From: Anthoceros angustus
Lineage: Eukaryota; Plantae; Anthocerotophyta
Assembly: GCA_010909165.1 (NCBI GenBank)
Contig: MU008165.1
Location: 930,001 to 994,000 of the forward strand
Direction of reading: 5' to 3'
Length of the DNA stretch: 64,000 nucleotides
Shown: piece by piece, positions 1 to 40,872 of the stretch
Position numbering within the stretch: position 1 is the first letter of the stretch
Layout: each line of letters opens with the position of its first letter
Program-made: the position numbers and the translations under genes
Notes under the pieces: model-generated
The model's input: only the letters and a program-made list of their open reading frames with translations
The model's database searches: none
Told to the model about the DNA's origin: nothing

Positions 1-390
1 GTCATACTAGCAGACTTTGGTTTGTCTGTTCCATGTCTCCAAAACGAACATGAATTATTGTACAGGGGAGCTGCAGGAACCCCATGTTACATGGCTCCGG
101 AGGTATTGGAGTCGGAAGACGATGTAAACATAAGCTATACTTCAAAAGCCGATATTTGGAGCGCAGGAGTCATTTTGTATGAAGTTTTAACCGGAAATCG
201 TCCTTATATAGGATATGAGTTCGACGCCGAAAAAGAAGAATGGATAACTCAATTGGACCTAGATGAGTGGCCCAACATCTCACACGAAGTGAAAGATCTA
301 CTACACTCAATGTTACATTTAGAACAAGAGTGTAGACCGGATGCGCAAGTTCTAAACCATTCTTGGTTTTGCTCGCTATCTTATATATGA
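1..390 (+). CDS. Ser/Thr protein kinase (CAMK group, CDPK/PPCK-like), C-terminal half, copy 1, cut by window start
   Basis: LADFGL at ~7-24, then GTPCYMAPE, KADIWSAGVILY and LNHSWF, stop at 390; same sequence as 11063-11879 and 37411-38227. Confidence 0.9.
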   Translation, partial: VILADFGLSVPCLQNEHELLYRGAAGTPCYMAPEVLESEDDVNISYTSKADIWSAGVILYEVLTGNRPYIGYEFDAEKEEWITQLDLDEWPNISHEVKDLLHSMLHLEQECRPDAQVLNHSWFCSLSYI

Positions 391-669
391 AAGATAGTAA
401 TTTTATTATATAAGAACTTTTATTTGTATTATATATTTTTAATATAATGATTTTTATTTTAACTTTATTCATAATTTCATTAAACCACTCTTGGCCTCTT
501 TCTTGTGAGAAAGTCTTCAAGCCATGCAAGCGGCATGAAAATTGATGTAGTGAAGAGATTGGAGTATATCGCTATGTGTTTAGCCGTGAGTCTTTTGGTC
601 ATTGTCATAGCATGGCATAATAGCATCGGACAATTTCTTCTTCTATAGCTACATATTATAGTTACTAAA

Positions 670-1786
670 TCGCATGTTAGAATCTTGACGGGTTCGCAAA
701 CCCCGATTCTGCGGCTCTAAGCGGGCTCAACGTGCTTGGGACGACCACACCAAGGGTGTGCGAATGTTTTGAATCATGAGCCGAGCAAGGTAACGTGGCC
801 GAGGCGGAGTGTGAAGATGGCGGCGTAGAAGGAAAATTGGCATTTATGGAAACGGCTATTGTTGAAGTCCCACCTTGCAGCCACGAGAGAACTCCTGCAC
901 AGGCAATGGACACCCGTTACGAAAAGCCATCACACAAGAAAGGGGTGGTAGGCTTTAGCACAGCCTTGATGAACTGGAGAAATCCTTGCCCATGGCCCCG
1001 TGAGTCTCGATGGCAAGGGGATGAAGGCGTGGCCCTTCTTGCATGGGCGAGTACTTGTGAACGCTCGTTGTCGCGCATCTCTCCGCCACCCAACCCGGAG
1101 GGTTGATGATGGCGTGCTTGCGGTGTCCCGCAAGGTCATTGTAGCCACATCCACACCGAAACGGTCCCCTCGGCCGAGAACATGGCGTCGCGGACGGCGT
1201 GATGCGTAGCAATGCGCTGCCCGCCACCGGAGAGCGAGGGCTACGGCGAGTCTAAAGAGAGCGCCAAAGGTTGGACCAAACCAAAGTGAACCTCATCGGT
1301 AGAAAAGAAGCCGGTGCGACTAAAATACCTTGATGCAAGGTCGGGCTAGAAGCCATGAACTGCTCCTTCCCGAGCAAGAGCGGAGGCGAGCTCGAGTGGT
1401 CAAGGAATGGAGGAATCGAGGAGCAAAGCCCGCGTGCCCATACAAGTTTCTTCTCATGGAGGGAGGCCAAAGCCCCACGCCGTCCAGAGAACGAGGACGA
1501 ATGCGGCATGACCGCCTAGCCTCAGAGGATAGGACACCCCTAGCCAATCTTAAGGACAAGCATGCAGGAAGGCGCCTCCTCGGCCGAGACGAAGGCCTTG
1601 AAGATGCGGTAATCCCTGGGGATTAGGAAATGGGAGGCCTAGATGCGGGTTGAGAGGACCAAGCTCAAGCGTCAGGCCATGCTCAGGCGACTCTAAGGGC
1701 CGCTCTTGAGGTAAGCAATTGCATTCATGTGAGCACTTCCTCAACGGACAACCAAGCAAAACAAGTCTAATATGCAAATACCAATT
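670..1786 (-). mobile_element. Internally deleted LTR-retroelement internal region
   Basis: 780-1050 matches 12280-12570; ~1515-1786 matches 40004-40283 in reverse complement; lies directly after the LTR-like end and a TGGTAT motif. Confidence 0.5.
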
Positions 1787-2308
1787 TGTAACACTAGGAG
1801 AGAGTAGCTTGCGTTGTGGTTTTCCTCCCACACTCTCCCCACGAACAACACGCAAATTCGCACATGGCTCTGAGTGATAGCTTTGGCCTCCTCACAACTC
1901 TCTTGCATTGCATATGTAGAGGACAAGTTATGATGTGAGCTTGTCCTTTGTGAAAGGGTCTATATATCTAGGCCTTGGCATTGGCATATTCCTAAGATAT
2001 CCTATTGGCATGATGTAAATATCCAAAGAATACACCATAATATGCAAGGAATATGCTAAAGCATATAACTTGTGTTTATCCACTTAGTTATTGCTAACCG
2101 TGTTTAAGTAACAGTAATCGATGCTTAATTAACATAACCACTTCATATTAATTAATTAATACTAATAACTTACTTAATGATAAGTCATTAGATTAATTAA
2201 TGCTAGATATAAATGAATTTAACCACTTCATATTAATTAATTAATACTAATTACTTACTTAATGATAAGTCATTAGATTAATTAATGCTAGATATAAATG
2301 AATTTAAC
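1787..2308 (-). mobile_element. LTR-like segment (U3/R/U5); left end defined, right end uncertain
   Basis: Minus strand has TATATAGA, then ...CTCTCCTAGTGTTACA-AAT-TGGTAT (LTR end followed by a PBS-like start). Second copy ends at 40003. AT-rich part has an ~85-bp duplication (2137-2308). Confidence 0.5.
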
Positions 2309-2426
2309 ATAAATCAGCAGCACTATCTCTTTCTAAAATAGATGCCAATATACCAATCGACACACGTAGTTGAAAATTTACCAATTTACTAGTTGCCAAT
2401 ATGAAGCCCGGTAGTTTCTCATGGGG

Positions 2427-2433
2427 TATAAAT
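2427..2433 (+). promoter_or_regulatory. Putative TATA box of the kinase cassette transcript
   Basis: TATAAAT ~110 nt upstream of the first AAG|GT donor-like site (2539); conserved at 39418-39424 on the minus strand in copy 3. Confidence 0.45.
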
Positions 2434-2454
2434 GGGCGAGACTTAAAATCAAAG

Positions 2455-4075
2455 CTGGCTCGGACTCGAACTTCAAATCTTGTTATCCATTCTTCTTGCA
2501 TGTAACTTTTCATAATTCTATGATCTACGGTTGTTAAGGTTTGTTCAATGAAGATTGATGTTCTCCTTACGGAGGGATGAGTTTATGCATGTATATTCCT
2601 ATGTGTGCTAACCTAATTCATTCTCTACTTGTTCTCTGTTTCCCTAGAGGGCACGTAAATTACCCAAAGGCGAGACCTAAACCGAAAGATTTCGCCATGA
2701 ACTTAAAAATCTCACATTCTTGCAAATATCTTTTAATAATCGTGTGATCTACGGTTGTTAAGGTTTGTTCAATGAAGATTCATGTTCTCCTTTATAGAGA
2801 TTCATGTTCTCTATCTTTATAGAGGATGGGTGTATGCATGTGTATTCCGTGTTAACGAATTCATTCTTTCTACTTGTTCCCTACAGGTTTCCCTAGAGGG
2901 CACGTAAATTACCCAAAGGGCGAGACCTAAACCGAAAGATTTCCTCCGCACCATGAACTTAAAAATCTCACATTCTTGCAAATATCTTTTAATAATCGTG
3001 TGATCTACGGTTGTTAAGGTTTGTTCAATGAAGATTGATGTTCTCCTTTACGGAGGGATGAGTTTATGCATGTATATTCCTATGTGCTAACGAATTCATT
3101 CTCTCTACTTGTTCCTTACAGGTTTCCCTAGAGGGCACGTAAATTACCCAAAGGAGACCTAAACCGAAAGATTTCCTCCGCCATGAACTTAAAAATCTCA
3201 CATTCTTGCAAATATCTTTTAATAATCGTGTGATCTACTTGTTAAGGTATGTTCCATGAAGATTCATGTTCTCCTTTATAGAGGATGGGTGTATGCATGT
3301 ATATTCCTATGTGCTAGCAATTCATTCTTTCTACTTGTTCCCTGGTTTTCCTAGAGGGCACGTAAATTACCCAAAGGCGAGACCTAAACCGAAAGATTTC
3401 CTCACCATGAACTTAAAAATCTCACATTCTTGCAAATATCTTTTAATAATCGTGTGATCTACGGTTGTTAAGGTTTGTTCAATGAAGATTGATGTTCTCC
3501 TTTACGGAGGGATGAGTTTATGCATGTATATTCCTATGTGCTAACGAATTCATTCTCTCTACTTGTTCTCTGGGTTTCCCTAGAGGGCACGTAAATTACC
3601 CAAAGGAGACCTAAACCGAAAGATTTCCTCCGCCATGAACTTAAAAATCTCACATTCTTGCAAATATCTTTTAATAATCGTGTGATCTACTTGTTAAGGT
3701 ATGTTCCATGAAGATTCATGTTCTCCTTTATAGAGGATGGGTGTATGCATGTATTCAAGTTACAATTCATTCTTTCTACTTGTTCCCTGGTTTTCCTAGA
3801 GGGCACGTAAATTACCCAAAGGCGAGACCTAAACCGAAAGATTTCCTCCGCACCATGAACTTAAAAATCTCACATTCTTGCAAATATCTTTTAATAATCG
3901 TGTGATCTACTTGTTAAGGTTTGTTCAATGAAGATTCATGTTCTCCTTTACGGAGGGATGAGTTTATGCATGTATATGTTCCTATGTGCTAACTCATTCT
4001 CTCTACTTGTTCTCTGAGTTTCCCTAGAGGGCACGTAAATTACCCAAAGGCGAGACCTAAACCGAAAGATTTTCT
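2455..4075 (+). repeat. ~228-bp tandem array (exon+intron-like unit), left part
   Basis: CCATGAACTTAAAAATCTCAC recurs at ~2696, 2952, 3181, 3405, 3633 and 3852. Confidence 0.95.
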
Positions 4076-4094
4076 CACAGCCCAACTCAACATA

Positions 4095-7000
4095 CAGCAG
4101 GCTCGTGATGTGCTCGAATCGACGATGCTTTCATTTCTGAGGTTTTATACATGTGCTTGAAAGAACATCACATTGGGCGATGCAGTTGTTAAGGTTTGTT
4201 CAATGAAGATTCATGTTCTCTATCTCATGAATTAGCACCTAACGGGTGGGAAAAACAGGATATTGAACATTTACTGGGCTATGTCAGGCCTAATCTAACG
4301 AGGTCTGCAAATATTGTCAAACCTCTCAGAGGCGTTGTGGCATGTTGTGGCCTCCTTACGTCGGTGTGGGGTCTTAGGCTTCTTGCATCGGATCCTTGCG
4401 TGACATTCTCTCCCCAGAGGTGGTCGTCCTCCGACCATTGGTGCAGGCGAAACGATTGCAAAGCTTGTCTCCCATGTGCGGGTACATCGGGCTCGTTAGC
4501 CCAACCGAGAAATCTGATGTCGAGGCCGAACTGGCGCTTAGCTGAGATGCGTCAATCGGTTGTGAGAAGTGAGGACCGTGATGGACGGCCCGGATGAAGA
4601 GGGTTAGGGCGGTGATGAGGCCGGTCTTCTGTCAGGTCCCTTATGTCGAGGAGATGCAAATGATTTATTGTGTCCTCTGGAGGTGGCGGGCGGGAACCAT
4701 TTGAGCATAGAGACATGGAGCGTCCCACATCTTCGGTCTGTGAGCAAGCCAAGCTGACCGGTTGATCACATGGGTGATGGGAAAGGACCCTGGCCGATGC
4801 TTGCTTCTTGCACGAGAGGATACCTATGGGGCTTCATGCTGAACACACCATCTATACTGGTAAGAGATGGGCGGGCGTCCTTGTCGACTCGCTACATCTG
4901 TCACTAAGCACTTCTTGCATGCCTCATGAACCCGTGAAACACATCCTCCGTGAGTTACGGCGCTTTGCCATTGGCGTTGGGAGGAGGGCGAGGCGGTGGT
5001 GGGCATTCACCATACAAGAGCTTGAAGGCGACTCGGTTGCGGCATGCTTGGAGGAGTTATCGCATACTCCATAAGAGGTAAAAGCTCCTCCCGTCCTTGT
5101 TTTCTGGCGAAGTGGCGCGGCTGTCTTGAGACTTGGTTGTGCTTCTCCGTCAGCCGTCTCTCTCGGGGTGGCGGTGTGGACATGAGTTACGGATCCAGGG
5201 ATTACGTGAGCGTCTTCAGGCGAGATGTGAACTTGTGTCTCTGTCGGACACGATACTTTCCAGGCGCCATGCGGTAGAAACACTTCCGGATAAACATCGG
5301 GCGGTTCTTGGCAGCGTATGGTGGGGACTAGGTGGCAAACCTTGGACAATCGATCGACAATCACCGGATCTTTGTCCAGGCGTGTCAGGTAGGTGAGTGA
5401 TGAAGTCCATGGAGATGGTGAAATCGCAGCGGATCTGTAAGGGTTGCGCACTGTGGAGTTTCGATGCTCGGGTTTGACTGTTGGCGAGGTGCGAGGCGGA
5501 CCCATGCTATGACATCTGCGCATGTCCTCCCAATGGTAATCTTGCTTGACCCTCGCATAAGTTTTGTCGATCTTAGGGTGTCCGAGATCTCGTCGGAGTG
5601 TAGGATATCGTCGGTGTTGGGTCATGGGTGGTGACCAAAACGGCCCTTCCGCTGATTTTGCGTCCTTGATAGAGTAGACTGCGAGGCTAGTGGGTATGCC
5701 GGCTTGCGTGTACACTGCTGTTGATAAACCGACCACCATTTTGGGTCCTTTGGCGAGGCTGCGAACTTGGCGGAGGTTTCCGGTATGTCACCATCAAGGT
5801 GCAGCCCCTCCTGGGTAGCGTCAGCCACGGCGTTGGAGGTCCGTCACGTATTTGATGTCCATATCATAATCGACTAAGTGTTCGGACCGGTAGCCCGGTA
5901 CGTGCGTTAGTGAAATGGTTGAAAAGTGTTGTGAATGGTGGTCGATGAAGCAAGTGAAATGTTGGCCGAGTAGGTAGTGGCGCCATACCTTGGTGGCGTG
6001 TATGATGGCTAACATTTGTTGGCATGCGTAATTCGTTGTGCACCACAGCTCTAGGACTCGTGGCGATGACCTGCCGTTTTGGGACAACACAATCGATCGG
6101 GCGTCGTGTGCCTTTGTGTACTGTGGTCCGCCAGCTGGGGGGGCGGTCTTGAGGCCGTTCGAGAGAGAAGGCCTCTTGGCGTCTTTCCCCAAGCGTGATG
6201 GCCTTACCGTGGATGCTTTGAGGGCCTCTATGGCATGGCAATTATTTAGATCAGGCGAACTGCGGTAGAAACACGCCATGCCGAGGAAGCCTCGCGGTGA
6301 TCACGTGTCTGGAAGGGCCACTCCATAATCGCCTTGATTTTGCGGGTGTCGTGAGATACGTCGGCCGAGATGATGTGCCCAGTCGCATTTTTCGCATAAA
6401 AGGCGCACTTGCTTCTTTGCGGAGATTATGCTTAGAAGGAGTTCCATGACTCCGGAATAAGCGATAGTGTTCCTCACCGTAGATTAGGATGTCGTCGAAA
6501 GACCTCCACCGTGGCGGCGGCCTCGGGATCTCTTGCATGAGACCTTTGGAAGGTGGCGGGGCGTTAGTGAGCCAGGCATGACCCACTCAGTGGCGTGCCT
6601 TGTCGGAAGGCGGTCTTGTGTTCATCGCCTTCCGGATTCGATCGGTAAAACCACGACCTCGGTCGATCTTGGTGAAATGCTTGTCCCATGGGTTGGTCAG
6701 AATCTCGATTACGGGCATCGACGTTCGATGGTTGCCTTATTCGAGGCGGTAATCAACACACAACCTCCAGTGCCCGTCGGGTTTGGCCACATCACGGGTG
6801 CCAAGGCGACCGAGCGAGCAAGCCTGCATGAGTTCATCCACGCCTCTTGATTTCTTCGCAGCACGTGCGATAAGGCGGTATACTAACGGTTTGTGCGGGC
6901 GAAGCTCGATGGCGTGGTCCACGGCATGAGTGGGAAGTTGGCGGCTCGAGATGGCGAGTGCAGATCCTTCATGGCTGCTTGAGTGCACCTCCGTGTCGGC

Positions 7001-9360
7001 TGGCGGACTGCCGTACCCTCAGGTAAGACTCTCTTGGGCAGGCGATGTACATAATTGCAGGCGGCTTTATTGAGGGCCGATCGCACAACAATTTGTCGGG
7101 GATGTATCATCATGACATATTAGGTGCAGCACAACCTAAGATGTTGTGTGCCCGGTCAATTTGCGAGTGCTTGGAGTGGTGGGCAAGCCACGGTTTGGAT
7201 GAGATCGTGGCAAAGGCGGGCACGGTGAACATTCCTCTTGGTACCCTCCGGGAAAAACACGGTGGCGGTGGCGCTCGCTCCTTGTCGGTCTCCTTGCCGT
7301 TGTGACCACGTCGACACTCGTCCGTGTCACGATGAGGATTCTGCGGTTGGCCGCTGCGAGATGAAATGGTGGCTGGCTCTGAGTCCACATTGCCGCTCTC
7401 CTCGATGCTTCATCTTGATCGGTATGTGGGACGGGTTGGGGGGTCAGGCGTGAGGTTTGGCCGACTGCCCAGCGGTGATTTCGGGGTTCCTCGATCTCCT
7501 CGATCTTGACCCCTGGTTGCTCTTGGGCTTACCTCCATCCCCACGGGTGGTCAGTCTCTTTGAGCCGATTGATGAAGTCCCGACGGTGTGGGCATGACTT
7601 GACCCGTGGTCGGTGGAGGCACATGTGAAGCACATGTGTTTGTCTGATACTTCTTCGCTCCTCCTCGGTCAAGAGCTTGAAGGTCGGTTTCTTTTCCATC
7701 GCGTTTGCTTGTCCCCATTTGGGCTTAGCAGTTGGGTGTTGGCATGCTTGTACTTATTATTGCCGTAATTAATCATTGCTTTCATTGCTTGACGGTGTGC
7801 AATCGGTTGTGTCCCTAAGTGAATTTTCCATCGATGAAGCGCTCGATTTTTGTTCCTCGTGGGCGGGGCATGTCCAACTGATTATGAGATTCTTACAGAC
7901 CTTGGTGAATCTTCGAGCGGTGATCTGATTCCTGATGGTTGTGGCGGGAAGTGTTAATTTGGCGGAAGGAGGGCCGAGGGAGTAGATGGGGCTTCCATGC
8001 CCAATTCTGCTTTCATTGCCTCCACCAGCAGTGCGTACCCTTCAGCGACATCACGGTGTATCTTCTGGAGTGGGTCCTTCTCCGTGCCCGGCTTGTCCAG
8101 GGGTCATGAACCGCTTGTGCATCTTTTCGTTTCCATTGAAGGTCGTGGTTACGATCTTACTGTAATTCTTTATCGGTAGTGAGGACAGTCCTCTTGGGAC
8201 TCGAGTTGCTCTGGTAGGCCCGACCCTTCCGGGCCTCCCGCCTCGCATCAGAGCCGCCTCCTTACCGGCTCGGATGTCCTTGTTGTTGTTTTCACGGGGA
8301 GGTTTCTGGTAGTATAGGTTGCTCCTCGCTTTCGTCGCCACATGACCACCGATGCCGCTTCTTTCACATCGACCGGCGGTTCTTGGGCGGGATCCGGAGT
8401 ACCTCTTGGCGGCTCCGTCGGCTCGTGGCCGGTGATGGCATGGGAGGCGGGATCCACCGTCGCCGCTTCTCGCGCAGAGGACTGCCCCATGGCCTCGCAA
8501 GCCCAATCACCGCCCAGCCGACCTTCGACCATCGAGATTCGACGCGGGTGAGGGCCGACTCCATGGCTCGACCGGCTTTCCGGCCGGCGCGACGTTTCGT
8601 GCACGGCCCACCCCGTCTTCCGCCTGTGGGGCCGGGAGTGGGCGGCCTCTGGCGCGTCCAGGATGTCAGGCCTCGGCGTCCTTGGCCGGCGGTCTTTGCG
8701 GGAGGAGCTCGGGCGGTGGGCTCGGGAGCTTTCCGAGGTCGGCCCCGACGCAGGGCCGGGTTCGTGGTACGCCCACCGGATGGTGGGATCACTGGATCCG
8801 GCGTTCGGACGGGCGGCCGCAGGCCACGCACTGGGATTGTCCCGGCCGGGAGAGGGAGTATCCGACGCTGGTGGCGTCCGGCTGGGTGGTGAACTGAGGC
8901 CGCCACGCACCGAGCGATTGGCTCCTCGCCGCGGCCGCTGAGCGATCGGTGTCCGCCATAGCCGACCGACGGCACGGCCTCCAGCCGATGCGGGCCGTTG
9001 AAGATCGCGGCTCATACTAAGATGCTACGAAAGCCGAATGCGACAAACTAGGCTCCGTGATGTGCTCGAATCGACATGCTTTCATTTACGTTGGGTTTTA
9101 TACACCTCGGTCCTTACGGACCAAGAACATCGACTTATAGCCGGTGACACCTTATTTACATGATGGTTAGTAACGGTTTTTCTCTACGGACGTGGGCATT
9201 TAACGTGGGGTAACGGATGGCGATTCGACATTGACATTACGTACGACGCGGCTGGGGCCGCAATGATCGCGAGGTGGGTACCGTGAGTGTCTGCCCTTTA
9301 TGTGAGGCTGTAATACCCTCTTTACGCTTAGGGGTCTTGGTTTGCCGGTGCCACGGGTCA
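4095..9360 (-). mobile_element. Degenerate Ty3/gypsy LTR retrotransposon nested in the array
   Basis: Minus-strand order: gag zinc-knuckle remnant CFTCASTDH (~7610-7635), protease-like DS(G)A region (~7380), RT (DHAIEL, WRLCVDYR, FDDILIY), RNase H (LAIIHATKVWRHYLLG), integrase (HPKIDKTYARVKQDYHW). PPT GGGGAGAGAA at 4406-4415 precedes TGTCAC. PBS-like TTAGTATGAGC at 9010-9020. Confidence 0.9.
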
Positions 9361-9364
9361 CCAT

Positions 9365-11035
9365 GATTGCACTATGAACTTAAAATCTCACATTCTTGCA
9401 AATATCTTTTAATAATCGTGTGATCTACTTGTTAAGGTTTGTTCAATGAAGATTCATGTTCTCCTTACGGAGGATGAGTTTATGCATGTGTATTCCTAGT
9501 GTTAACGAATTCATTCTCTCTACTTGTTCTCTATAGGTTTCCCTAGAGACGTAAATTACCCAAAGGCGAGACCTAAACCGAAGATTTCCTCAGCCATGAA
9601 CTTAAAATCTCACATTCTTGCAAATATCTTTTAATAATCGTGTGATCTACGGTTGTTAAGGTATGTTCCATGAAGATTCATCCTTTATAGAGGGATGGGT
9701 GTATGTAGCATGGTGTTACAATTCATTCTTTCTACTTGTTCCCTGGTTTCCCTAGAGCGTAAATTACCCAAAGGCGAGACCTAAACCGAAAGATTTCCTC
9801 CGCACCATGAACTTAAAATCTCACATTCTTGCAAATATCTTTTAATAATCGTGTGATCTCACGGTTGTTAAGGTATGTTCCATGAAGATTCATGTTCTCC
9901 TTTATAGAGGGATGGGTGTATGCATGTGTATTCGTGTTAGCAATTCATTCTTTCTACTTGTTCTCTGAGGTTTCCCTAGAGACACGTAAATTACCCAAAG
10001 GCGAGACCTAAACGAAAGATTTCCTCCGCACCATGAACTTAAAAATCTCACATTCTTGCAAATATCTTTTAATAATCGTGTGATCTCTACGGTTGTTAAG
10101 GTTTGTTCAATGAAGATTCATGTTCTCCTTTACGGAGGGATGAGTTTATGCATGTATGTTCTATGTGTGCTAACGAATTCATTCTCTCTACTTGTTCTCT
10201 GAGGTTTCCCTAGAGCACGTAAATTACCCAAAGGCGAGACCTAAACCGAAAGATTCCCTCACCATGAACTTAAAAATCTCACATTCTTGCAAATATCTTT
10301 TAATAATCGTGTGATCTCTGTTGTTAAGGTATGTTCCATGAAGATTCATGTTAATGATGACTCATCTTGTTATCCATTCTTCTTGCATGTAACTTTTCAT
10401 AATTCTATGATCTACGTTGTTAAGGTTTGTTCAATGAAGATTGATGTTCTCCTTTACGGAGGGATGAGTTTATGCATGTATGTTCTTATGTGTGCTCTAT
10501 TCATTCTCTCTACTTGTTCTCTGGGTTTCCCTAGAGGGCACGTAAATTACCCAAAGGCGAGACCTAAACCGAAAGATTTCCTCCGCCATGAACTTAAAAA
10601 TCTCACATTCTTGCAAATATCTTTTAATAATCGTGTGATCTACGTTGTTAAGGTATGTTCCATGAAGATTCATGTTCTCCTTTATAGAGGGATGGGTGTA
10701 TGCATGTGTATTCCTAGTGTTAACGAATTCATTCTTTCTACTTGTTCCCTCGGGTTTCCCTAGAGGGCACGTAAATTACCCAAAGGCGAGACCTAAACCG
10801 AAGATTTCCTCCGCACCATGAACTTAAAAATCTCACATTCTTGCAAATATCTTTTAATAATCGTGTGATCTGTTGTTAAGGTTTGTTCAATGAAGATTGA
10901 TGTTCTCTCCTTTAGAGGATGAGTTTATGCATGTATGTTCTGTGTGTGCTAGCAATTCATTCTCTCTACTTGTTCCTGCGGGTTTCCCTAGAGGCACGTA
11001 AATTACCCAAAGGCGGGACCTAAACCGAAAGAAAT
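9365..11035 (+). repeat. ~228-bp tandem array, right part, running into the kinase
   Basis: Seven more uORF-bearing units (~9375 to ~10817). The last partial unit continues straight into the kinase ATG at 11063. Confidence 0.95.
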
Positions 11036-11062
11036 ACTCCTATTTATCAATCTTTTAAAATT

Positions 11063-11879
11063 ATGGAGTCCACAATGAAAATTGAAGTGAGAATGTTTGA
11101 AGAAAGATACATATGTGGAAAATGTATCGGTGAAGGAGGTTTTTCAAAGTCTATGAATGCTATGACAAATATACGGAAAGATATTTGCCTGCAAAATTAT
11201 GAAAAATCTAAAGACATAAATGATGCAATATGTAGAGAGATCAACACTCTTGATCTCTTCCAAAATATTCTCATATTATTAACACAAAAGTGTTCATGAG
11301 GATATTGAACATATTTATATTGTGATGGAGCTATGTACCAATGGTACACTAAAGGATGAACTAAAAAGGGGAGCTTATTGTGAAGAGGATGCAAAATACT
11401 TATGTTTAACCTAATGGAGGCAATCAATTTTGCCACAGGCATAATGTTATGCATCGCGATTTGAAACCGGCTAATATACTATTACTTAGCCGTCTCAAAG
11501 TCATACTAGCGAGACTTTGGTTTATACATTCCATGTCTCCAAAGCGAACATGAATTATTATGCTGCGGGAACCCCATGTTACATGGCTCGGAGGTATTGG
11601 AGTCGGAAGGCGATGTAAACATAAGCTATACTTCAAAAGCCGATATTTGGAGCGCAGAGTCATTTTGTATGAAGTTTTAACCGAAATCGTCCTTATATAG
11701 GATATGAGTTCGACACGAAAAAGAAGAATGGATAACTCAATTGGACCTAGATGAGTGGCCCAACATGTCACACAGTGAAAGATCTACTACACTCAATGTT
11801 ACATTTAGAACAAGAGTGTAGACCGGATCTGTGACAAGTTCTAAACCATTCTTGGTTTTGCTCGCTATCTTATATATGA
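11063..11879 (+). CDS. Minimal Ser/Thr kinase (~272 aa), copy 2, frameshifted as assembled
   Basis: IGEGGFSK, FACKIMKK, YIVMELC, HRDLKPANILL (~11450-11485), DFG, YMA(P)E and KADIWS spread across frames; intronless; AT-rich. Confidence 0.85.
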
Positions 11880-12169
11880 AAGATAGTAATTTTATTATAT
11901 AAGAACTTTTATTTGTATTATATATTTTTAATATAATGATTTTTATTTTTAACTTTATTCATAATTTCATTAAACCACTCTTGATTGCCTCTTTCTTGTG
12001 AGAAAGTCTTCAAGCCATGCAAGCGGTCATGAAATTGATGTAGTGGTGAGATTGGAGTATATCGCTATGTGTTTAGCTAGTGAGTCTTTGTTTTGGTCAT
12101 TGTCATAGCATGGCATAATAGCATCGGGACAATTTCTTCTTCTATATTTCATATTATAGTTACTAAATC

Positions 12170-14090
12170 GCATGTTAGAATCTTGACGGGTTCGCAAACC
12201 ACGATTCTGCGCTCTAAGCTGCTCAACGTGCTTGTGGAAGACCACACCAAGGGTGTGCGAATGTTTTGAATCATGAGCGAGCAAGGTGAGCGTGGCACAG
12301 GCGGAGTGTGAAGATGGCGGCGTGCGAGAAGGAAAATTGGCATTTAGGGTGGAAGCGACTATTGTTGAAGTCCCACCTTGCGGCGCCGTCCACGAGAGAA
12401 CTCCTGCGGGGCAATGGACACCGTTGCACGAAAAGCCATCACACAAGAAAAGGGGCGGTTGTGGTAGGCTTTATACGAGCCTTGATGAACCTGGAGAAAT
12501 CCTTGCCCATGGCCCCGTGAGTCTCGATGGCAAGGGGGATGAAGGCGTGGCCCTTCTTGCATGGGCGAGTTTGTGGAGGTCTGACCTCCCACTGTCTTTC
12601 GCAATGCAAAAGGCAAAGGCCTTTCCAAACTCGGCTGGAGATGGATGACCTTAAAGGGATGCCACGCATCTTCAAGCTCCTTGCTTGTGAGGAGTCCCTC
12701 AGTTTCCCATAAATGCACCAAGTAGGTGCTGAGATAGCATGGCCTGGGCCCTTCCTCATCCACTGAATTTGGCTTGAGGAGCTTCTCTCGATGGTGTATG
12801 TACGCTTCATACATGATAGTCCCCCAATCCGGCTTGGCTCCCATGGAAATCTTCCACAAAAATTGGAGGAAGTTGGTCTTTGAAATAAGAGTGCGTTGGT
12901 AATTTACCAACCCCAGCACAATCTTGCGAAGAGCCTCCACTTGACTCCTTGATGCTCTCGGTCTTCCACCCATTCTTGGCGTGGGCCTTCACTCCTCCAT
13001 CCATCATGTCAAGGAACTCCTGCGGGATGTCGGTGTCCTCTTCCCTCCATTGGACCTTTCGAGAAGAGCAATTCCGGTGCTCTCTTCCTCCGGTCTTCCA
13101 TACACACCGAATGCTTTTGTCCAAGCGTGGATCCGTTCTAGCATTCCTTCCGTGGTGCGGCAAGGCGGCTTCCGATTGATGGAGGTTGATGTAACACTCC
13201 TCAATCAATTCCAAATTGGTGTAGGCCCATTGGCGGCCATACACCCAGTGATTGGATGTTGTCTTCCTTACGCCTTGCACGAAATCCACTAAATCTCGGG
13301 GTTGAGGTCATCCGGCAAAGCAAGTGAATTGGGGCATCACAAGTTCACCTCCTCTGGCGCGTAGCCCTGCTTTCTTTCTTTCCTTTTTCTCCTCGCGAGG
13401 AGGAGCCCTTGCCAGGCGGCTCCTTTCCCTTGCCTTTCCCAGCTCGAGGCATGGCGCCTGGCTTTCCTCCAAGTTCTTGGAAGGAAGGAAATTACTCCCC
13501 AATTTGGCAGTCTCGAGGCCTCGCTTCCAACACTCCTTCTTCTCGAGACCGAAAACAAAACCACTTCCAACACACAATTCCAACGTTAGGCTCGGTGACG
13601 CGCCTCCGCCTCACAATCTTTCCAGGGCAGGGCGCCGCCGGTGGGTGGTCGTGATCCTTCCTTTTTCACTCTCAATTTCTTCAACTTTGTGCCGCTCCTA
13701 GCGCCCCAACCTCGCGCCTCCTGCCCTTGACAGCTCTCAGCACTCGAAATGTGCCCCTCTGCTGTTCACAGCGTCCGAGGAGCCTCTCGATGCTCAGCGC
13801 CTGCCTCCTTTTCTTCTCGCCTAGGGTTTTCTCCTTTGCTCCTGATCGCGCGCCCAGCTCTCCGTCGCACTCGACTCGGCCGCAGTGGGGTGGTGGCGGC
13901 TTTCTCGTCTCCTCTTGCTCTTACGCTCCAGCGCCAGTCTCAGCTCCTCGCGAAGTGAGTTTACCTCAGTTCGAAGGAAGTTGGCGCTGCCCAAAACTTC
14001 ACTTCGCCCTCTTTGGATGACCGCCACCTGGAGGCCGCGCAACCCTAGATTGGGTTCATCATTCCAAAATCCTCATTCTATCTAAACTAC
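12170..14090 (-). mobile_element. Retroelement-associated extra ORF (non-gag/pol), fragmented
   Basis: Minus-strand ORF pieces 13821-14042, 12807-13289 and 12359-12973. The motif PDWGTIMYEAY...PCYLSTYLVHLW..EGLL resembles accessory ORFs of plant LTR elements (recalled, not searched). Confidence 0.5.
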
Positions 14091-14519
14091 CTATTTTCCT
14101 ATTCTGTCCGCTATCCTATTTAACCGCTTTCTAATTACTATATATATTTATTCCCCTATTGGTGAGCATATATAGTGGATATCCCTCCTCTATTCTAAAT
14201 TTCCTTTTTAGCCGAGATTTGTCAGTCTACATGATGATACACTTGCATGATGATCTGCTCCTTACTCGGGCTACGGCGTGGTGTGTGACCTCGGTGGTAG
14301 TCTGCCGACCTACCAACCTTCGGTGCCTCACGCACCAAATGCGGGGTCGCCGACCCGTTTTCCTCTGGGATATCCTTTTGCCTTCCTAACAATATTCTCG
14401 ACTCTAGTTCCAAGATCTTCAGAAGTTTTTCTTGCATGTTCCTCTTCAATCGGTCTTAGCCAAAAAAAATCAAACTTGTTCGTCCTCTGGCCCGTTTGGA
14501 CTGGTTGCCCAAACTTTTA

Positions 14520-15125
14520 CGTTCCACAACCACAGAGGCCGAGTATGTTGCAGCAACTAAGGCTTGCAAGGAAGCCAAATGGCTTGCTCGTTTAGTGGGA
14601 GACTTGGGGATCAAGGTTGAGCTGCCACTGTTGCATTGTGATAGCCAGAGTGCTATCCGATTGGCAAAGAATCCAGTGTTTCATGCGAAGACTAAACATG
14701 TGGATGTGAAGTATCACTTCATTCGAGAGGTGTTGGACGACAAGAGGTGCAACTTGTCAAGGTTCACACCACCCGAACCCTGCAGATATTCTTACCAAGG
14801 ACTCTCTGAGCAATTTGCACCCTGGCTTCGGACGATGGGCATGAGGTAGTCCATTCTTCTCTGAAGGTAAATTGGCCTTTAAGTGGGAGGTTGTAAGGGT
14901 ATTAAAGCCCAATGTACTTAGACTAATACACTTAGTCTAAGTTGGGTGTCGATTAAGTATCATTAGTTTAGCTGAAGCTAATCACTAGGAAGCTTCTTGT
15001 GCTCCTTCCTAGTGGCTTCTTGTGGAGCTTCCTAGGGAGCCCTGTTGGAGGGTATAAATACCCGTCAAGCCTCATCTCAATATGAGAGAGTTACACTTGC
15101 CTCCTCCTCTCCTCTCCTCTTTCCA
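14520..15125 (+). mobile_element. Ty1/copia 3' fragment: RNase H end, PPT, truncated 3' LTR
   Basis: STTEAEYVAA...CDSQSAIRLAKNPVFHAKTKHVDVKYHFIRE, stop at 14849; PPT GTGGGAGG, then TGTAAGGG at 14892; TATAAATA at ~15054. Confidence 0.9.
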
Positions 15126-17755: not shown

Positions 17756-17945
17756 ATAAGCAAAGAAGGGAACCAACATGAATTTGCAAAAGTACCTCAC
17801 TTGGTCATTGGCTGCCCCCAGGATCAACGGACTTGGTGACAAGCCTGCCATAAGAGTCCTTTCCGGCAACAACAATACCCATTACTAGCAGTAGTCCCGA
17901 TGATATCATTTTCATCATAATAATCTCATAAAAATAATAATAACC

Positions 17946-20515
17946 CCCATTTTAGCCTACTTACTTATAACATCGTTAGGCAAACTCCACGCGTAGGAGA
18001 AGCTTTAGGCATGGTCCATGGTTCGTCTTGTTTCTCTCCCTTTTTATTCTTGGGGTCGGGTTTGTGCTTCATGTTCATCCAAGCTTTGTTCGTTGCTCTA
18101 GTAGTTCATGCCCTTCTGTTAATGGTGCTGGGCCTGTGCTCTATCTTCCAAATTTTGGTAGTTGGTCCTTGTAGCTACCTTTAGTTTGCAGTCCTGTGCT
18201 ATTTTGTGCACACCCTTGCATGATACTTCATTGTAAGATATCTTCTATATCAACGGCATGCAGATATGATTTTGCAAGAAAAACAACTCCGCACCTCAAA
18301 AACGGTTAGAAGTTCAACAATTTAGCTATTGCTGCAACTTTGCCATTTGTGATTTCGTTCCAGATTGAATTGAAAGCCAGGCATCTGCAACAATCGCAAT
18401 CAAATATTTATTGCAATCACAAAGGAAGACTAGCTTAAAGCTACGTCTTCAAAATGTGTACCACTTGAAATAGCCATGCGTTCCTGCTGCGCCTCCATGA
18501 GAGAATAGATGCTTGTTGGGCGATCTAGCTTACTTTACAAAATGAAGCTATTTGTAGATAAGTCCACCTTGAAAAAGATGCCCTTAACTTACTTGAGTAA
18601 ATTTACTTAGCTTAATAACTCAAATAATTAAATTATTAAGTATTTTGGACGGCAGGCAAAGTGTATGTGACACATGCCTCGTACAATGTATTTGATACCA
18701 AAATGCTTGTTCGCTGCCCCAATGAGATAAATAGATGCCTAACACATAAGGTCATTTTATAGTAGAACACCTCGACGATTCGGAGAATTGATGGTAAGCT
18801 TGCTATATTACAGTCCTTGCCAACATGAGGAACTGCTTGAACTACTTGAATCTATATCTTAATCGCCTATCCCAATTTTCCACAAAGACTTGTCGTAATC
18901 TTGGTGTTTTACTAAGCCTCGAATTAAATAAGCCACGTTCCATAAACTTGCCACAAACATAAAAACTCAAACGTGGATCAAGTTCCGAGACCGCTATATT
19001 GTACTTTTTTCCTAGCAACCTTTAGCCATGAAACAATTGATTTTCTCTTTTTTAGATTCATGAGGTTTGTCATTGGTCTAAACCTTTATACCAAACCTTG
19101 GTGGTCATAACTACTATAGTCTCGATTAATAGAAATATGTACATCAAGATATTTCAATAAACTTGAAAATTCATTAGTAGATCATAAGCTCACGAAGATC
19201 TTGGAGAATGGATACCAATCCAATGATGTCCCCATTTTAGCCTACTTACTTATAACATCGTTAGGCAAACTCCACGCGTAGGAGAAGCTTTAGGCATGGT
19301 CCATGGTTCGTCTTGTTTCTCTCCTTTTTATTCTTGGGGTCGGGTTTGTGCTTCATGTTCATCCAAGCTTTGTTCGTTGCTCTAGTAGTTCATGCCCTTC
19401 CAATGGTCGGGCTCTATCTTCCAAATTTTGGTAGTTGGTCCTTGTAGCTACCTTTAGTTTGCGATCCTGCTATTTTGTGCACACCCTTGCATGATACTTC
19501 ATTGTAAGATATCTTCTATATCAACGGCATGCAGATATGATTTTGCAAGAAAAACAACTCCGCACCTCAAAACGGTTAGAAGTTCAACAATTTAGCTATT
19601 GCTGCAACTTGCCATTTGTGATTTCGTTCAGTTGAATTGAAAGCCGCATGCAACAATCGCAATCAAATATTTATTGCAATCACAAAGGAAGACTAGCTTA
19701 AAGCTACGCCTTCAAAATGTGTACCACTTGAAATAGCCATGCGTTCTGCTGCGCCTCCATGAGAGAATAGATGCTTGTTGGGCGATCTAGCTTACTTTAC
19801 AAAATGAAGCTATTTGTAGATAAGTCCACCTTGAAAAAGATGCCCTTAACTTACTTGAGTAAATTTACTTAGCTTAATAACTCAAATAATTAAATTATTA
19901 AGTATTTTGGACGGCAGGCAAAGTGTATGTGACACATGCCTCGTACAATGTATTTGATACCAAAAATGCTTGTTCGCTGCCCCAATGAGATAAATAGATG
20001 CCTAACACATAAGGCTGTTTTATAGTAGAACACCTCAGCTTCAGGATTCGGAGAATTGATGGTAAGCTTGCTATATTACAGTCCTTGCCAACATGAGGAA
20101 CTGTTTGAACTACTTGAATCTATATCTTAATCTGCCTATCCCAATTTTCCACAGCACTTGTCGTAATCTTGGTGTTTTACTAAGCCTCAGTAATTAAATA
20201 AGCCACGTTCCATAAACTTGCCACAAACATAAAAACTCAAACGTGGATCAAGTTCCAGAGACCTGCTATATTGTACTTTTTTTCCCTAGCAACCTTTAGC
20301 CATGAAACAATTGATTTTCTCTTTTTTTTAGCCCGATTCATGAGGTTTGTCATTGGTCTAAACCTTTATACCAAACCTTGGTGGTCATAACTACTATAGT
20401 CTCGATTAATAGAAATATGTACATCAAGATATTTCAATAAACTTGAAAATTCATTAGTAGATCATAAGCTCACGAAGATCTTGGAGAATGGATACCAATC
20501 CAATGATGTCCCCCA
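17946..20515. repeat. Direct tandem duplication of a ~1.29-kb AT-rich unit
   Basis: CCCATTTTAGCCTACTTAC at ~17946 and 19231; both units end GGATACCAATCCAATGATGTCCCC; differences are mostly small indels. Confidence 0.95.
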
Positions 20516-20677
20516 TTTTATATCCATGATTTTGTTGCCGGAAATCTTTACGGTAAGAGAAGCAATATTTGGGCGTTTTGGCAATTTCATATAATGCTTG
20601 TAAGTTTGACTTTAACATAATATCACATTTTGTTCATACGAAAATTTTAAAAGTAGAAAGACTTGATGATTTACAAT

Positions 20678-22190
20678 TCAAAATCTTTTACATATAACTC
20701 CTCTTGAAATTGCTAAACTATTGTTATTAAGATTAAATTGAAATATATGATTCATTTGCAATATATTTCCAATCACATTACTGTTACTTTCATCTGAAAT
20801 CAAAGCATAACAAAAGACATCTCTCTTATCTGTCACAGGTATAAAATAGTTGTAATGATGTAACTTCCAATCAAAATCGCCAAAATGCAATGTTAATGAT
20901 GGAATAGAATAATTCTTTTGTACGTTATAGCAAAGAGGAAATCTTGCTTGTTGTTCCATAATCAAATTTCGGTTCAAATTTGTAGCCGTCGTTAGTGTAG
21001 AGATGACAATCTCATATATATGTGGATGTAATGTAATATATGGAGTACCGGAATCCACAATTGTACCTCCTGATCCATTTGTTTGTATCATGAAAAAATT
21101 AGGATCAATAGTTGACAAACGGTGATTGTTTATGCTAATTCCATCGAGGCCAATGTAGTAAAAATTAGGCCATATTGCATTATTTATCAATGATACGTAC
21201 TGTACACCATACATATATTAAAAAGAGGATATAAGTATCAAACATCAAATGAAAAATATAAGAAATTACAATACACTAAAATCAACCCCCAAACATAAAC
21301 ATCTTACATGGAAAGAAACATTCGCAAAACGAGGGTTTCGGACAATTTGACCAAATTGGATGTATCCTTGAGATGAATAATGTTTCTTGTCGAATCGATT
21401 TGGGAGACAATAAGCAAATGAGTTGACCCCTTGTTGACGTGCTAATTGACTAATGAAAGAGTTATTTCCTTTATCAAGACCCAGCACACCAGATTGTCCC
21501 TCAGGAATCATATTACTTTGATTATGTCCACATCCGAATTGCAAAGAGAGACCTTTATTTTTTGTTTTAGATTTGTGTGTGGAAATAACCCTTGAGACAT
21601 CGGTAGCAAGGTAACCTGTGCTACTTCTACTCCCATTGCCATAAGTAGTTGTATACTCACACAAATTGTTTTGGAAATTGTATATGATCCCTTGAGGACA
21701 ACTAGAAGATTTCACGTGAGTCAAAGTATTAGATATAGAACTATTAAATATATGTAGTGAACGGTGGGAGTTTGGAGGATCTTCTCTTGGAGGATCCTGA
21801 GAGAAACAATTATGCTCATCACAAGGCACACATTGAAACCAGACTAATTCGCTACCTGTATCCAATACCAAACGTACAATTTGTGAAGGCTGTCCAATCT
21901 ACAAAGCATCAAGATTATTCGTAAGGAACGAATGTTAGATAAACGTTCTAGTGAGCGGTGGAGTTTGGAGGATCTTCTCTTGGAGGATCCAGAGAAACAA
22001 TTATGCTCATCACAAGGCACACATTGAGCAGACGCGCACTGTCCAATACCAAACGTACAATTTGTGAAGGCTGTCCAATCTACAAAGCATCAAGATTATT
22101 CGTAAGGAACGAATGTTAGATAAACGTTCTAGTGAGCCCGATGCAGAAAAATAAATATTAATAAGAAGTATAAAGGAGGAATAAGAACAT
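20678..22190 (-). CDS. Family A1 aspartic protease (nepenthesin/CDR1-like); one intron (21200-21307); 5' end duplicated and frameshifted
   Basis: IGQPSQIVRLVLDTGSELVWFQC, FGCGH, GVLGL, FAYCLP, FYYIGLDGISI, IVDSGT and VIGNILQ; GT-AG intron joins ...VSFH|YVSLINN. Confidence 0.9.
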
Positions 22191-32240: not shown

Positions 32241-32586
32241 TCCACCCATAACGAATGGCGAGCGAAGTGGTTGATTATCAAGCCTTGTTCCAGCAGCACC
32301 TTGATTAGCAAGCATCAAAACTTGTGCAAGCAGCGACTTGATTATCAAAACTGGTTCAAGCAGTACAACATCGCTTTCATGCCACACGGTGGTAGCAATG
32401 CTCGAAGTTTCACGATGCATGTCGAATGAGCTGATAAGTGGCATTTGACATGTAAGCTGCAACTCACTATATGTATGTAAGCATGGTGTAATGTGCATCG
32501 TGAAAAAATGAGGCCTGGCCTTAGATGCGAAGAAGGCTTAAGCTTCATCGGGATGCTCCCTCCGTGGCTCACTTGCTTTCCTGCTT

Positions 32587-35500: not shown

Positions 35501-35845
35501 GGTGATGAAGAGGGTCTTGCATGCCCTGCTCTTGTCCTCGAGCAGGAGGGGGAAGATGCAGGAGGGAGAGGTGCCGCCTTCGGAGTCGATGCTTCCCAGC
35601 CGCTGCCGCTCTGCGACCGAGTTCCATGCGATCACCTCCGCATCTTCCCCCCAGATGGAGGCCACCAGGCTCTTGCTGACCTCCAGCACCGACCTGTCCG
35701 ATGGGAGACGGGAGCACGTAGATCCGGAATTGTCTATGGCCACTTGGCAGAATCCATCCTCCAGCACCGGCACCAGATCGTCGTCTTGGGCAACTTGCCT
35801 CTCCTCCTCCCTCTCCGGCTCTGCCAAGAGCTGGAAGAACTCCAT
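32587..35845 (-). CDS. Intronless ~1,080-aa VWA-domain / Cys-rich protein, copy 1 (homopolymer frameshifts)
   Basis: MIDAS-like DNSGST...GGTSP...ITTDGE; coiled-coil-like middle; CDVC, CVFC and CPYSR; C-terminal CCGSCG and HFRDVF...TSGHSNRHRAV. ORF pieces 33878-35845, 33366-33725 and 32587-33507. Confidence 0.75.
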
Positions 35846-35914
35846 GGCGCCTGAATCAGACGCCCACACCACTTCCAGCTCCTGAGCCCAGCTGAATTCC
35901 TGCGAGAGAGAACA

Positions 35915-36265
35915 GGCAAGCTTAGGAGGCGCCAAGCAAGCAGGCTTAGGAGGCGCCAAGCGAGCAAGCAGGCAAGCAAGCTTAGGAGGCGGCAAGCGAG
36001 CAAGCAGGCAAGCAAGCTTAGGAGGCGCCAAGCGAGCAAGCAGGCAAGCAAGCTTAGGAGGCGCCAAGCGAGCAAGCAGGCAAGCAAGCTTAGGAGGCGC
36101 CAAGCGAGCAAGCAGGCAAGCAAGCCTAGGAGGCGCCAAGGAAGCAAGCAGGCAAGCAGGCAAGCAGGCAAGCAAGCTTAGGAGGCGCCAAGCAAGCAGG
36201 CAAGCAAGCTTAGGAGGCGCCAAGCAAGCAGGCAAGCAAGCTTAGGAGGCGCCAAGCAAGCAAGC
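35915..36265. repeat. Minisatellite (GCAAGCAAGCTTAGGAGGCGCCAAG core, ~27-35 bp units)
   Basis: About 11 tandem copies, ~70-420 bp upstream of the copy-1 VWA start codon; absent upstream of copy 2. Confidence 0.9.
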
Positions 36266-36699: not shown

Positions 36700-37001
36700 G
36701 ACCTTCTTATACATGTGTGTCCAAATGGCTCAGGCCATATGGATACACAAGTATACATAAATTTTTTTATTTATTTATCTATAAAAATATGGCTTCTAAG
36801 CATCCTAGGCTTAGATCGGTACTGAGATGGGGTACCAAGAGGGAGTGGAGGCCCTTGGTGCAATTAGGCACACCATGGTTAAGTACCAAATCCCATAGTC
36901 CGTCCAAGTGGACTGTAATACATATGTACAAATGGGTGTCCAAATGGCTTAGGCCAAAATGGACACACATTTATAAGAACGAACGTCGTTATTAAGCATC
37001 T
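36700..37001 (+). mobile_element. Short structured repeat family, left of kinase cassette copy 3
   Basis: GTGTCCAAATGGCTTAGGCCAAAATGGACAC hairpin and CTTAGATCGGTAC..AGATGGGG core; the family resumes at 40284. Confidence 0.65.
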
Positions 37002-37410
37002 GGCTCATGATTCAAAACATTCGCACACCCTTGGTGTGGTCGTCCCACAAGCACGTTGAGCAGCCCGCTTAGAGCCAGCAGAAATCAGGGTTTGCGAACC
37101 CGTCAAGATTCTAACATGTGATTTAGTAACTATAATATGCGTAGCTATAGAATAAGAAATTGTCCCGATGCTATTATGCCATGCTATGACAATGACCAAA
37201 ACAGCACTCACAGGCTAAACACGTAGCGATATACTCCAATCTCAGCTTCACTACATCAATTTTCATGACCGCTTGCATGGCTTGAAGACTTTCACAAGAA
37301 AGAGGCCAAGAGTGGTTTAATGAAATTATGAATAAAGTTAAAATAAAAAATCATTATATTAAAAATATATAATACAAATAAAAGTTCCTATATAATAAAA
37401 TTACTATCTT

Positions 37411-38227: not shown

Positions 38228-38254
38228 AATTTTAAAGATTGATAAATAGGAGTA

Positions 38255-40283: not shown

Positions 40284-40872
40284 TGCCTAAGCATCCTGCG
40301 CTTAGATCGGTACTTAGATGGGGAGCCTATGCATCTTGCGCTTAGATCAATACTTAGATGGGGTGCCTAAGCATCCTGCACTTAGATGGGTACTTCGATG
40401 GGGTGCCTAAAGGGAGTGGATGCCCTTGGTGCAAGTAGCTTAGGCACACCATCCTGCGCTTAGATCGGTACTTAGATGTGGTGCCTAAAGAGAGTGGATG
40501 CCCTTGGTGCAAGTAGCTTAGGCACACCATCCTGCGCTTAGATCGGTACTTAGATGGGGTGCCTAAAGCGAGTGGATGCTCTTGGTGCAAGTAGCTTAGG
40601 CACACTATCCTGCACTTAGATCGGTACTTAGATGGGGTGCTTAAAGGGAGTGAATGTCCTTGGTGCAAGTAGCTTAGGCACACCATAGACGTATTTATAA
40701 GAACATCTTCATTAAGCATCCTGCGCTTAAATCGGTACTTAGATGGGGTGCTTAAAAAGAGTGGATGCCCTTGGTGCAAGTAGCTTAGGCACACCATGGT
40801 ACAAGTTGTTAAGTACCAAGTCCATGGCGGAAATCCGGCCTTAGTGGACTTCAATAAAATTTTCTTCTTCTT
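40284..40872 (+). mobile_element. Short structured repeat family with internal ~76-bp tandem subunits, AATAAA and (TTC)n tail
   Basis: CTTAGATCGGTACTTAGATGGGGTGCCTAAA...GTGCAAGTAGCTTAGGCACACC repeated; ends GTGGACTTCAATAAAATTTTCTTCTTCTT. Confidence 0.7.

Follow-up and report, generated by a model that had tools for sequence, protein, structure and literature searches.

A two-subtype 228-bp satellite, probably born from an intron-bearing kinase 5′ region, in a repeated kinase cassette of Anthoceros angustus

Layout of the 228-bp arrays and of the kinase cassette

We analysed a stretch of 64,000 nt from Anthoceros angustus (Anthocerotophyta; GenBank assembly GCA_010909165.1, contig MU008165.1, positions 930,001 to 994,000 of the forward strand), hereafter called the window, in which arrays of a 228-bp tandem repeat directly precede an intronless protein kinase sequence of the CAMK type. 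An earlier note on this DNA had interpreted each repeat unit as an amplified intron and exon, with an upstream open reading frame (uORF) in each exon, and the arrays as a spliced leader whose unit number would act on kinase translation as a rheostat or as an exon-skipping switch. The results presented here sustain the intron and exon module. They give no support to the regulatory role and point to a satellite that probably arose from the 5′ region of the kinase gene and is nested in a repeated, largely dead cassette. Coordinates are given in Table 1; all positions are those of the window.

Tandem Repeats Finder reported 228-bp repeats at 2798-4076, 9369-10352, 10380-11029 and 38259-39327, the last also with a 455-bp period. 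The limits of the arrays were set by mapping one unit back onto the window and by aligning 19 units. Two unit subtypes, beginning AGGTTTGTTCAATG... and AGGTATGTTCCATG..., strictly alternate and form a dimeric higher-order repeat (455/456 bp). The head-to-tail order and the multi-unit period (228 and 455) are thus those of a satellite DNA with higher-order repeats. Subtype 1 is always the first full unit and the kinase-adjacent unit, and the kinase-proximal run comprises three units in cassette copy 2 and five in copy 3, that is, one dimer apart.

Both edges of the arrays could be read. On the kinase side, the last unit is truncated at AAACCGAAAGA, some 30 nt before the kinase ATG (11063 in copy 2 and 38227 in copy 3), in agreement with the claim that the last unit runs to the kinase; in copy 3 the frame ...GHVNYPKAGPKPK... 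is indeed open into the kinase ATG. On the other side, the TATAAAT proposed as a promoter element is present upstream of the arrays in copies 2 and 3. It aligns with the CGTAAAT of a regular unit, and the bases preceding it, GTTTCTCATGGGG, align with GTTTCCCTAGAGGG. As judged by this alignment, the 'promoter' is therefore probably a degenerate, decayed edge unit of the array. Similarly, the proposed 'first exon' (…CTTGTTATCCATTCTTCTTGCATG…) is a diverged part of a unit, of which copy 2 has two instances (2478-2536 and 10364-10422), the latter within array B with no TATA box before it.

By self-comparison, a block composed of an upstream part, the array, the kinase and a tail is present three times in the window. 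The segment 1520-2223 of copy 2 matches 40283-39562 (minus strand) of copy 3 at 90%. Copies 2 and 3 have the same sharp 5′ end (…CCTCAGAGGATAGG…), and a sharp 3′ end (…GAATCATGAGC) is common to all three copies, with differing flanks. Copies 1 and 2 have 290 bp more flank in common (to 1052 and 12570, respectively) and are therefore related by a larger duplication. No terminal inverted repeats were found at the cassette. Taken with the hairpin-forming tandem repeats at its 5′ end and one further 40-bp motif about 160 nt past its 3′ end (36840-36800), copy 3 has the look expected of a monomer in a head-to-tail repeat with a period of about 3.9 kb. The arrangement in the window is of two copies 11.5 kb apart and one inverted copy, and no head-to-tail order is seen there.

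Table 1. Features of the kinase cassette and of the 228-bp arrays in the window
Feature	Position	Strand	Description
Cassette copy 1	1-782	+	Cut by window start; kinase C-terminal half 1-390 (open 128 codons) and tail
Cassette copy 2	1520-12281	+	Array split by retroelement fragment
Copy 2 upstream part	1520-2426	+	AT-rich; 85-bp tandem duplication 2135-2308
TATAAAT	2427-2433	+	Read directly; copy 3 counterpart 39424-39418 (-); probably a degenerate edge unit
Array A	2434-4076	+	About 7 units, 6 uORF ATGs; opens with divergent 'start variant' unit 2478-2536
Insertion	4077-9368 (5,292 bp)	-	Degenerate Ty3/gypsy fragment between arrays A and B
Array B	9369-11032	+	About 7.5 units, 7 uORF ATGs; second 'start variant' 10364-10422; last unit cut at ...AAACCGAAAGA
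Kinase copy 2	11063-11879	+	Intronless, AT-rich, CAMK-type; several frame breaks
Cassette tail, copy 2	11880-12281	+	Common to all three copies
Cassette copy 3	37002-40283	-	Uninterrupted: upstream part, TATAAAT, array C, kinase 38227-37411, tail
Array C	39417-38259	-	About 5 units, cassette copy 3
40/78-bp hairpin-forming tandem repeats	40282-40686		Adjoin copy 3 5′ end

To estimate copy number, we relied on a DNA-like public run (X1; 32% of sampled words), whose library and read type are not on record and whose contigs on the stretch are short. Word depth in X1 was 190-1,130 over the kinase and the array versus 6-12 for variant contigs. The genome would therefore contain tens of copies of the cassette, a rough estimate drawn from k-mer depth and not from a count.

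Several further observations concern the cassette. An X1 contig of 381 nt (depth 42) joins 37919 to 38115, omitting 195 nt of the kinase, with 17 differing letters; it is a diverged deletion variant of the cassette located elsewhere in the genome. In the AT-rich upstream part, word depth in X1 rose to 6,000-15,000 at 39636-39863 (matching about 2040-2260), well beyond that of the remaining cassette; this stretch represents either a separate high-copy element or low-complexity words, and the 85-bp duplication of copy 2 (2135-2308) involves a piece of it. Just past the cassette 3′ end, 36704-36979 carries two copies of a palindrome-bearing motif of about 45 nt (…TGTCCA…GCCATTTGGACAC…), with 20-nt arms that are 95% complementary and 236 nt apart. 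Its X1 word depth was about 4,500, and it looks like a very high-copy small element. Finally, the start-variant unit (39355-39379) and the kinase (37541-37565) show an antisense match of 16 nt, which 18 of 200 random sequences equalled and which is therefore taken as chance.

Intron and uORF signals in the repeat unit

A donor-like AAG/GTTTGT or AAG/GTATGT (the slash marks the putative boundary) was found in every unit (21/21), including the sites at 3019 and 3247 that the earlier note gave as examples. Because the repeat is tandem, these are one donor copied and not 21 independent observations, a warning that holds for motif counts in tandem repeats generally. The CTAAC at 3087 and the TACAG ending at 3121 were likewise read where they had been described. 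Branch-like motifs (CTAAC, TTAAC or CTAAT) number 13 over the three arrays, two of them lying 5 nt apart in one unit.

The acceptor was less consistent. While the site at 3121 stands, the proposed position has an AG in only 8 of the 19 aligned units, and no column of the unit varies more by indels than this one, which is flanked by CTTGTTCYCT and GTTTCCC. At 9 nt downstream, 19/19 units carry an invariant CCCTAG/AG. Most units thus lack an AG at the proposed site, an observation that the earlier note had named as speaking against splicing, yet another AG is available. In the kinase-proximal unit, the CAG (G at 38308) is retained in about 80% of the X1 depth. Indel errors of the assembly limit all statements made here on the acceptor column and on reading frames.

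The donor, branch point, pyrimidine tract and YAG occur in the expected order and spacing in the real unit and in just 9 of 20,000 shuffles. This figure is rough, as it comes from dinucleotide-type shuffles of a single unit with a pattern fixed after seeing the data. It nevertheless suggests that the unit probably contains a real, at least ancestral, intron together with flanking leader sequence. Consistently, T content is 41% in the intron-like part versus 30% in the exon-like part, and nucleotide diversity (pi) is 0.141 versus 0.057, about 2.5-fold higher. The share of gaps is 9.5% in the intron-like half versus 3.7% in the exon-like half. The shuffles, the T-rich intron-like half and its higher pi bear out the idea of an amplified intron and exon module.

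Copy 2 has 6 + 7 = 13 uORF ATGs and copy 3 has 4 and a variant one, in agreement with the 13 and 4 units reported before. The ATG is kept at all 18 sites. The claim of one and the same uORF in each exon holds for 14 of these, which read MNLKISHSCKYLLIIV followed by a stop, and fails for three that encode another peptide and for one variant. The three differing uORFs, all in copy 2, have an A-run of four instead of five. Substitutions are absent, so that coding constraint and homogenisation are indistinguishable.

With respect to structure, the intron-like half (3053-3107 and the same part in other units) can be folded into a hairpin of about 55 nt (GGAGGGAUGAGUUU… with …GAAUUCAUUCUCUC; z = -1.63). 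Thirteen of 200 shuffles fold equally well, and the subtype differences in this region are mostly transitions that preserve wobble pairs. The exon-like half showed no stable fold and is unstructured on both strands (z = +0.99 against shuffles). In Rfam, no match reached the gathering score, with chance-level hits only (E of 6.6 to 9.4), and no tRNA was found. Tandem small-RNA genes (5S, small nuclear RNA or spliced-leader RNA) were rejected as an identity for the repeat, given the lack of an Rfam family, of a tRNA and of a stable fold in the conserved half.

The kinase copies are frame-broken and one array is interrupted

The C-terminal 128 codons of kinase copy 1 are open and match Pkinase with E = 4e-23 (on 1-384). 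The best solved relatives of the kinase are CDPK and CaMKII domains (E about 1e-15). HRDLKP, DFG and APE are readable across frames; the signature of a CAMK-group kinase (HRDLKPxN, DFG, APE) is therefore present, as a sequence relic only, since the frame is broken. A word search for close relatives returned a single match, at 38%, and an exhaustive search of 1.84 billion representatives gave nothing above about 50% identity. The nearest named relatives are streptophyte proteins (from Adiantum, Closterium and Ranunculus). As judged by these matches, the kinase is a divergent CAMK-type kinase of the plant lineage and bears no sign of a viral source.

In each of the three copies, the reading frame of the kinase is broken. 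An intact downstream gene, as a spliced leader would need, is thus not found in the window, with assembly errors as a caveat. In the copy alignment, the kinase copies differ almost solely by single-base indels at different sites, which is the signature of an unpolished long-read assembly. Four breaks are nonetheless common to copies 2 and 3 (at about 11185/38105, 11207/38083, 11290/38000 and 11430/37858). Two of these, 38105 and 38083, are covered by an X1 contig (38000-38114, depth 210) with a gapless match to the assembly; elsewhere X1 does correct the assembly, for example by two added letters at 37457 that restore the frame. These observations favour real shared frameshifts and would fit a pseudogene that was amplified. 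We regard the kinase copies in the window as probably pseudogenes, or mostly so, as part of the overall explanation given below.

In a second public run (X2), RNA only by a guess, depth was found in 3 of 30 bins and no contig fell on the arrays, the upstream part or the 5′ half of the kinase; since contigs show presence and not absence, this gap is weak evidence. One X2 contig of 1,055 nt shares 161 nt with the kinase C-lobe (37514-37674; 93%, 11 mismatches and 3 gaps) and is otherwise unlike the cassette. It carries a kinase fragment inside another transcript or locus and says nothing firm on expression.

In copy 2, the 13 units cannot be read as one leader, as had been proposed, because 5,292 bp with an opposite-strand Ty3/gypsy fragment separate its two parts. 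An integrase zinc domain was detected in the open reading frame (ORF) 4924-5739 and an RNase H in the ORF 5821-6279. A direct repeat of 55 bp lies at 4099-4151 and 9050-9104, and an orphan 36-bp piece of a unit, including the donor, at 4185-4220. With this orphan piece and only the 55-bp repeat, the split is not a clean insertion. A CRE retrotransposon tail, considered for the ORFs of 780-1860 and 12027-13700, was rejected as these have no Pfam support.

Origin of the satellite and alternative explanations

From the arrays, their subtypes and motifs, the copy structure, the insertion and the frame breaks, all observed directly, we infer an origin of the satellite from an intron-bearing segment, its neutrality and its membership in a macrosatellite. 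In the explanation that we hold to be probable, a two-subtype satellite derived from the intron-bearing 5′ region of a kinase gene is nested in a repeated, largely dead kinase cassette and is not a regulatory dial. A 5′ segment of the kinase gene, spanning an intron of about 100 nt and flanking leader, would have been duplicated in tandem and homogenised into the two subtypes. The satellite would then have been carried along as a cassette of about 3.3-4 kb was multiplied, in the order hairpin repeats, AT-rich upstream part, 228-bp array, intronless CAMK-type kinase and tail. The cassette would behave like a macrosatellite monomer or a segmental repeat, the number of units would drift in dimer steps via unequal exchange, and a retroelement would have broken one array. 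Given dimer-step exchange, a retroelement break and pseudogene copies, we take repeat number to be, most likely, a neutral by-product rather than a tuned control, and the best-supported account is historical, not regulatory. Should a copy be transcribed through the array, the intact donors and available acceptors could be used, which would yield a product with many uORFs. With many consecutive uORFs, reinitiation and nonsense-mediated decay should silence the main ORF instead of grading its output. As the main ORF is broken, this effect is moot for the copies seen here.

Several points weigh against this explanation. The assembly is rich in single-base indels, so that some frame breaks are errors, and the shared breaks lie in or near short homopolymers. 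X1 may come from the same sample as the assembly of the window, intact copies may exist, and the figure of tens of copies is a matter of k-mer depth. The gap in X2 has little weight, for the reasons given above. In the unit itself, all donors are intact and an AG acceptor is present in every unit. Furthermore, the exon-like half is better conserved, chiefly through more than 40 invariant columns over the uORF, and subtype-diagnostic sites are distributed 6 to 1 in favour of the intron-like half (p = 0.036), which hints at constraint or at biased homogenisation.

Among the alternatives, we examined whether the units could form a promoter or enhancer array in the style of the sub-repeats of ribosomal DNA (rDNA) intergenic spacers, in which a TATA-like CGTAAAT and an ACGT-core site (GGGCACGTAAAT) would be multiplied with each unit and the splice signals would be leftovers. 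The alignment of the real TATAAAT with the unit CGTAAAT, the location of the array directly 5′ of the gene in every copy and the presence of the CACGTA site in the conserved half are all in line with such an array. Yet the most invariant stretch is the uORF region and not CACGTA, and the kinase downstream is broken, which makes this reading unlikely.

We also consider it decidedly unlikely that the arrays are part of a retroelement, forming tandem repeats within its untranslated region or long terminal repeats (LTRs), with the kinase as a captured antisense gene. Satellites are known to derive from tandem repeats located in untranslated regions of plant LTR elements, and a gypsy-type pol fragment on the opposite strand does lie between arrays A and B. 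Its flanks, however, are not colinear (kinase, tail, upstream part and array on the left; array, kinase and tail on the right) and the arrays are therefore not its LTRs. Moreover, no LTR pair was found, just the 55-bp direct repeat, in copy 3 no pol lies near the array and kinase, and terminal inverted repeats are lacking. On these grounds, tandem repeats borne by an LTR retrotransposon were rejected.

The spliced leader itself would require transcription of the array from the TATA box, removal of introns of about 103 nt and joining of exons of about 125 nt, the unit number setting kinase translation or exon skipping acting as a switch. Invariant donors (21/21), a usable AG in every unit, ATGs in good context in all units, the upstream TATAAAT and a last unit reaching the kinase ATG are what such a leader would show; so are an intron-signal set beyond chance and the better conservation of the exon-like half. 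Against it, the kinase is broken in 3/3 copies, the copy 2 leader would cross the retroelement of 5.3 kb, the 'first exon' recurs in the middle of an array, the proposed AG is found in 8/19 units, three uORFs encode another peptide, the block is multi-copy and no contig of X2 lies on the array. In addition, 4 to 13 consecutive uORFs would nearly stop translation, not grade it. A working uORF leader, rheostat or exon-skipping switch is thus very improbable for this locus. A related possibility, to which we give hardly more than passing credit, is that transcription of some intact cassette copies starts at the array edge and that their units are spliced or recursively spliced, unit number setting leader length, uORF load and sensitivity to decay. 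Such copies would be the plant counterpart of the principle of Epstein-Barr virus (EBV) IR1, with satellite copy number setting the output of a cellular kinase.

Lastly, that the units are coding (228 bp being 76 codons, as 76-residue repeats fused to the kinase N-terminus) is scarcely credible: the unit length is a multiple of three, the ORF 10287-10763 runs through units B5-B6 and the same frame in copy 3 is open into the kinase, but all frames of the subtype consensus units are interrupted by stops (with an in-frame TAA from the usual CTAAC), no Pfam family matched, including ubiquitin, no homologue was found among 5.8 billion proteins within the length range seen, and the AlphaFold2 model is all-helical and of low confidence (predicted local distance difference test, pLDDT, 47). 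A polyubiquitin-like protein of 76-residue repeats was rejected on the same evidence of stops in all frames, Pfam, homologues and pLDDT. Subtype differences in the candidate coding frame, about five synonymous to five non-synonymous by eye, were too few to tell. The probability that remains after the explanations listed here is left for those that we have not thought of.

Other features of the window

Cassette copy 3 lies between the arms of an inverted duplication of 3.36 kb (32528-35884 and 47440-44085; 97.4% identity). Long ORFs associated with this duplication are found at 33878-36235 (minus strand, 785 aa) and 44061-46049 (plus strand, 662 aa); for the 785-aa ORF, no homologue was found at E <= 1e-20. 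At 17945-20520, a segment of 1.29 kb is duplicated in tandem with 95.8% identity. A TAXi-type aspartyl protease is present at 20678-21871 (minus strand) as two ORFs 52 nt apart (TAXi_N, E = 2e-30; TAXi_C, E = 6e-34), the gap between them being probably a frameshift error or a short intron. An ORF at 14496-14849 (plus strand) resembles by eye the C-terminal tail of a Ty1/copia polyprotein (…HCDSQSAI…AKNPVFHAKTKHVDVKYHF…), with no Pfam match. Finally, 49300-55000 and 56783-58360 are internally repeated blocks of very high GC content (64-72%) in which CCGCCATGGCG motifs occur; after them comes a tandem repeat of 298 bp in 5.3 copies.

Comparison with known systems

Control by multiple uORFs is exemplified by yeast GCN4, with four uORFs, and by mammalian ATF4. 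The arrays resemble these leaders in having several short ORFs with usable start contexts before a main ORF. The GCN4 and ATF4 leaders are, in contrast, unique sequences whose uORFs have distinct roles proven by mutation, whereas here the uORFs are identical copies of a repeat, in a hypothetical leader before a broken main ORF. The sub-repeats of rDNA intergenic spacers are also short, tandem and located upstream of the gene in each monomer, with promoter-like pieces duplicated; here the gene is the relic of a protein kinase and a promoter or enhancer role is putative.

The earlier note held that no named feature type covers such a module. A precedent for the model does exist in EBV IR1 (BamHI-W), where every unit contains exons W1/W2 and the promoter Wp. 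Splicing there joins or skips units, and function is reduced when fewer than five of them are present (PMC5834210). The likeness is that each tandem unit would supply splice sites and short exons for the 5′ part of a downstream transcript, that of EBNA-LP in the virus. The viral unit differs by its size of about 3 kb, by exons that are coding and in frame, and by transcription and splicing that are experimentally shown. Here, the unit is of 228 bp, exons of 125 or 116 nt would not keep the frame when joined, any transcript is hypothetical and the gene that follows is broken. Intact and spliced copies, if there were any, would amount to control of a cellular gene by the copy number of its reiterated leader exons, a mode documented so far, to our knowledge, mainly in a herpesvirus.

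Parallels are also provided by macrosatellites with an embedded intronless gene, such as human D4Z4 with DUX4, and by multi-copy arrays derived from a kinase subunit gene, such as Stellate/Su(Ste) of Drosophila. As in these systems, the cassette is a multi-copy unit of kilobase scale with a mostly degenerate intronless gene and shorter repeats nested in it; unlike them, it shows no head-to-tail order within this window.

The arrays share with ordinary higher-order satellites their head-to-tail units, two alternating subtypes, degenerate edges, changes by whole dimers and interruption by a retroelement. They differ in that the monomer has a full set of intron signals and a fixed place 5′ of a gene copy, which points to a genic origin and not to a transposon-derived or anonymous one. 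As we read it, the locus is an ordinary higher-order satellite within a gene-bearing, macrosatellite-like cassette, its sole unusual trait being the genic, intron-bearing origin of the monomer. If this reading is true, it offers a clear example of a satellite born from a gene's own leader and intron and travelling with a dead gene copy in a larger repeat, which would be useful for repeat annotation in the Anthoceros angustus genome.

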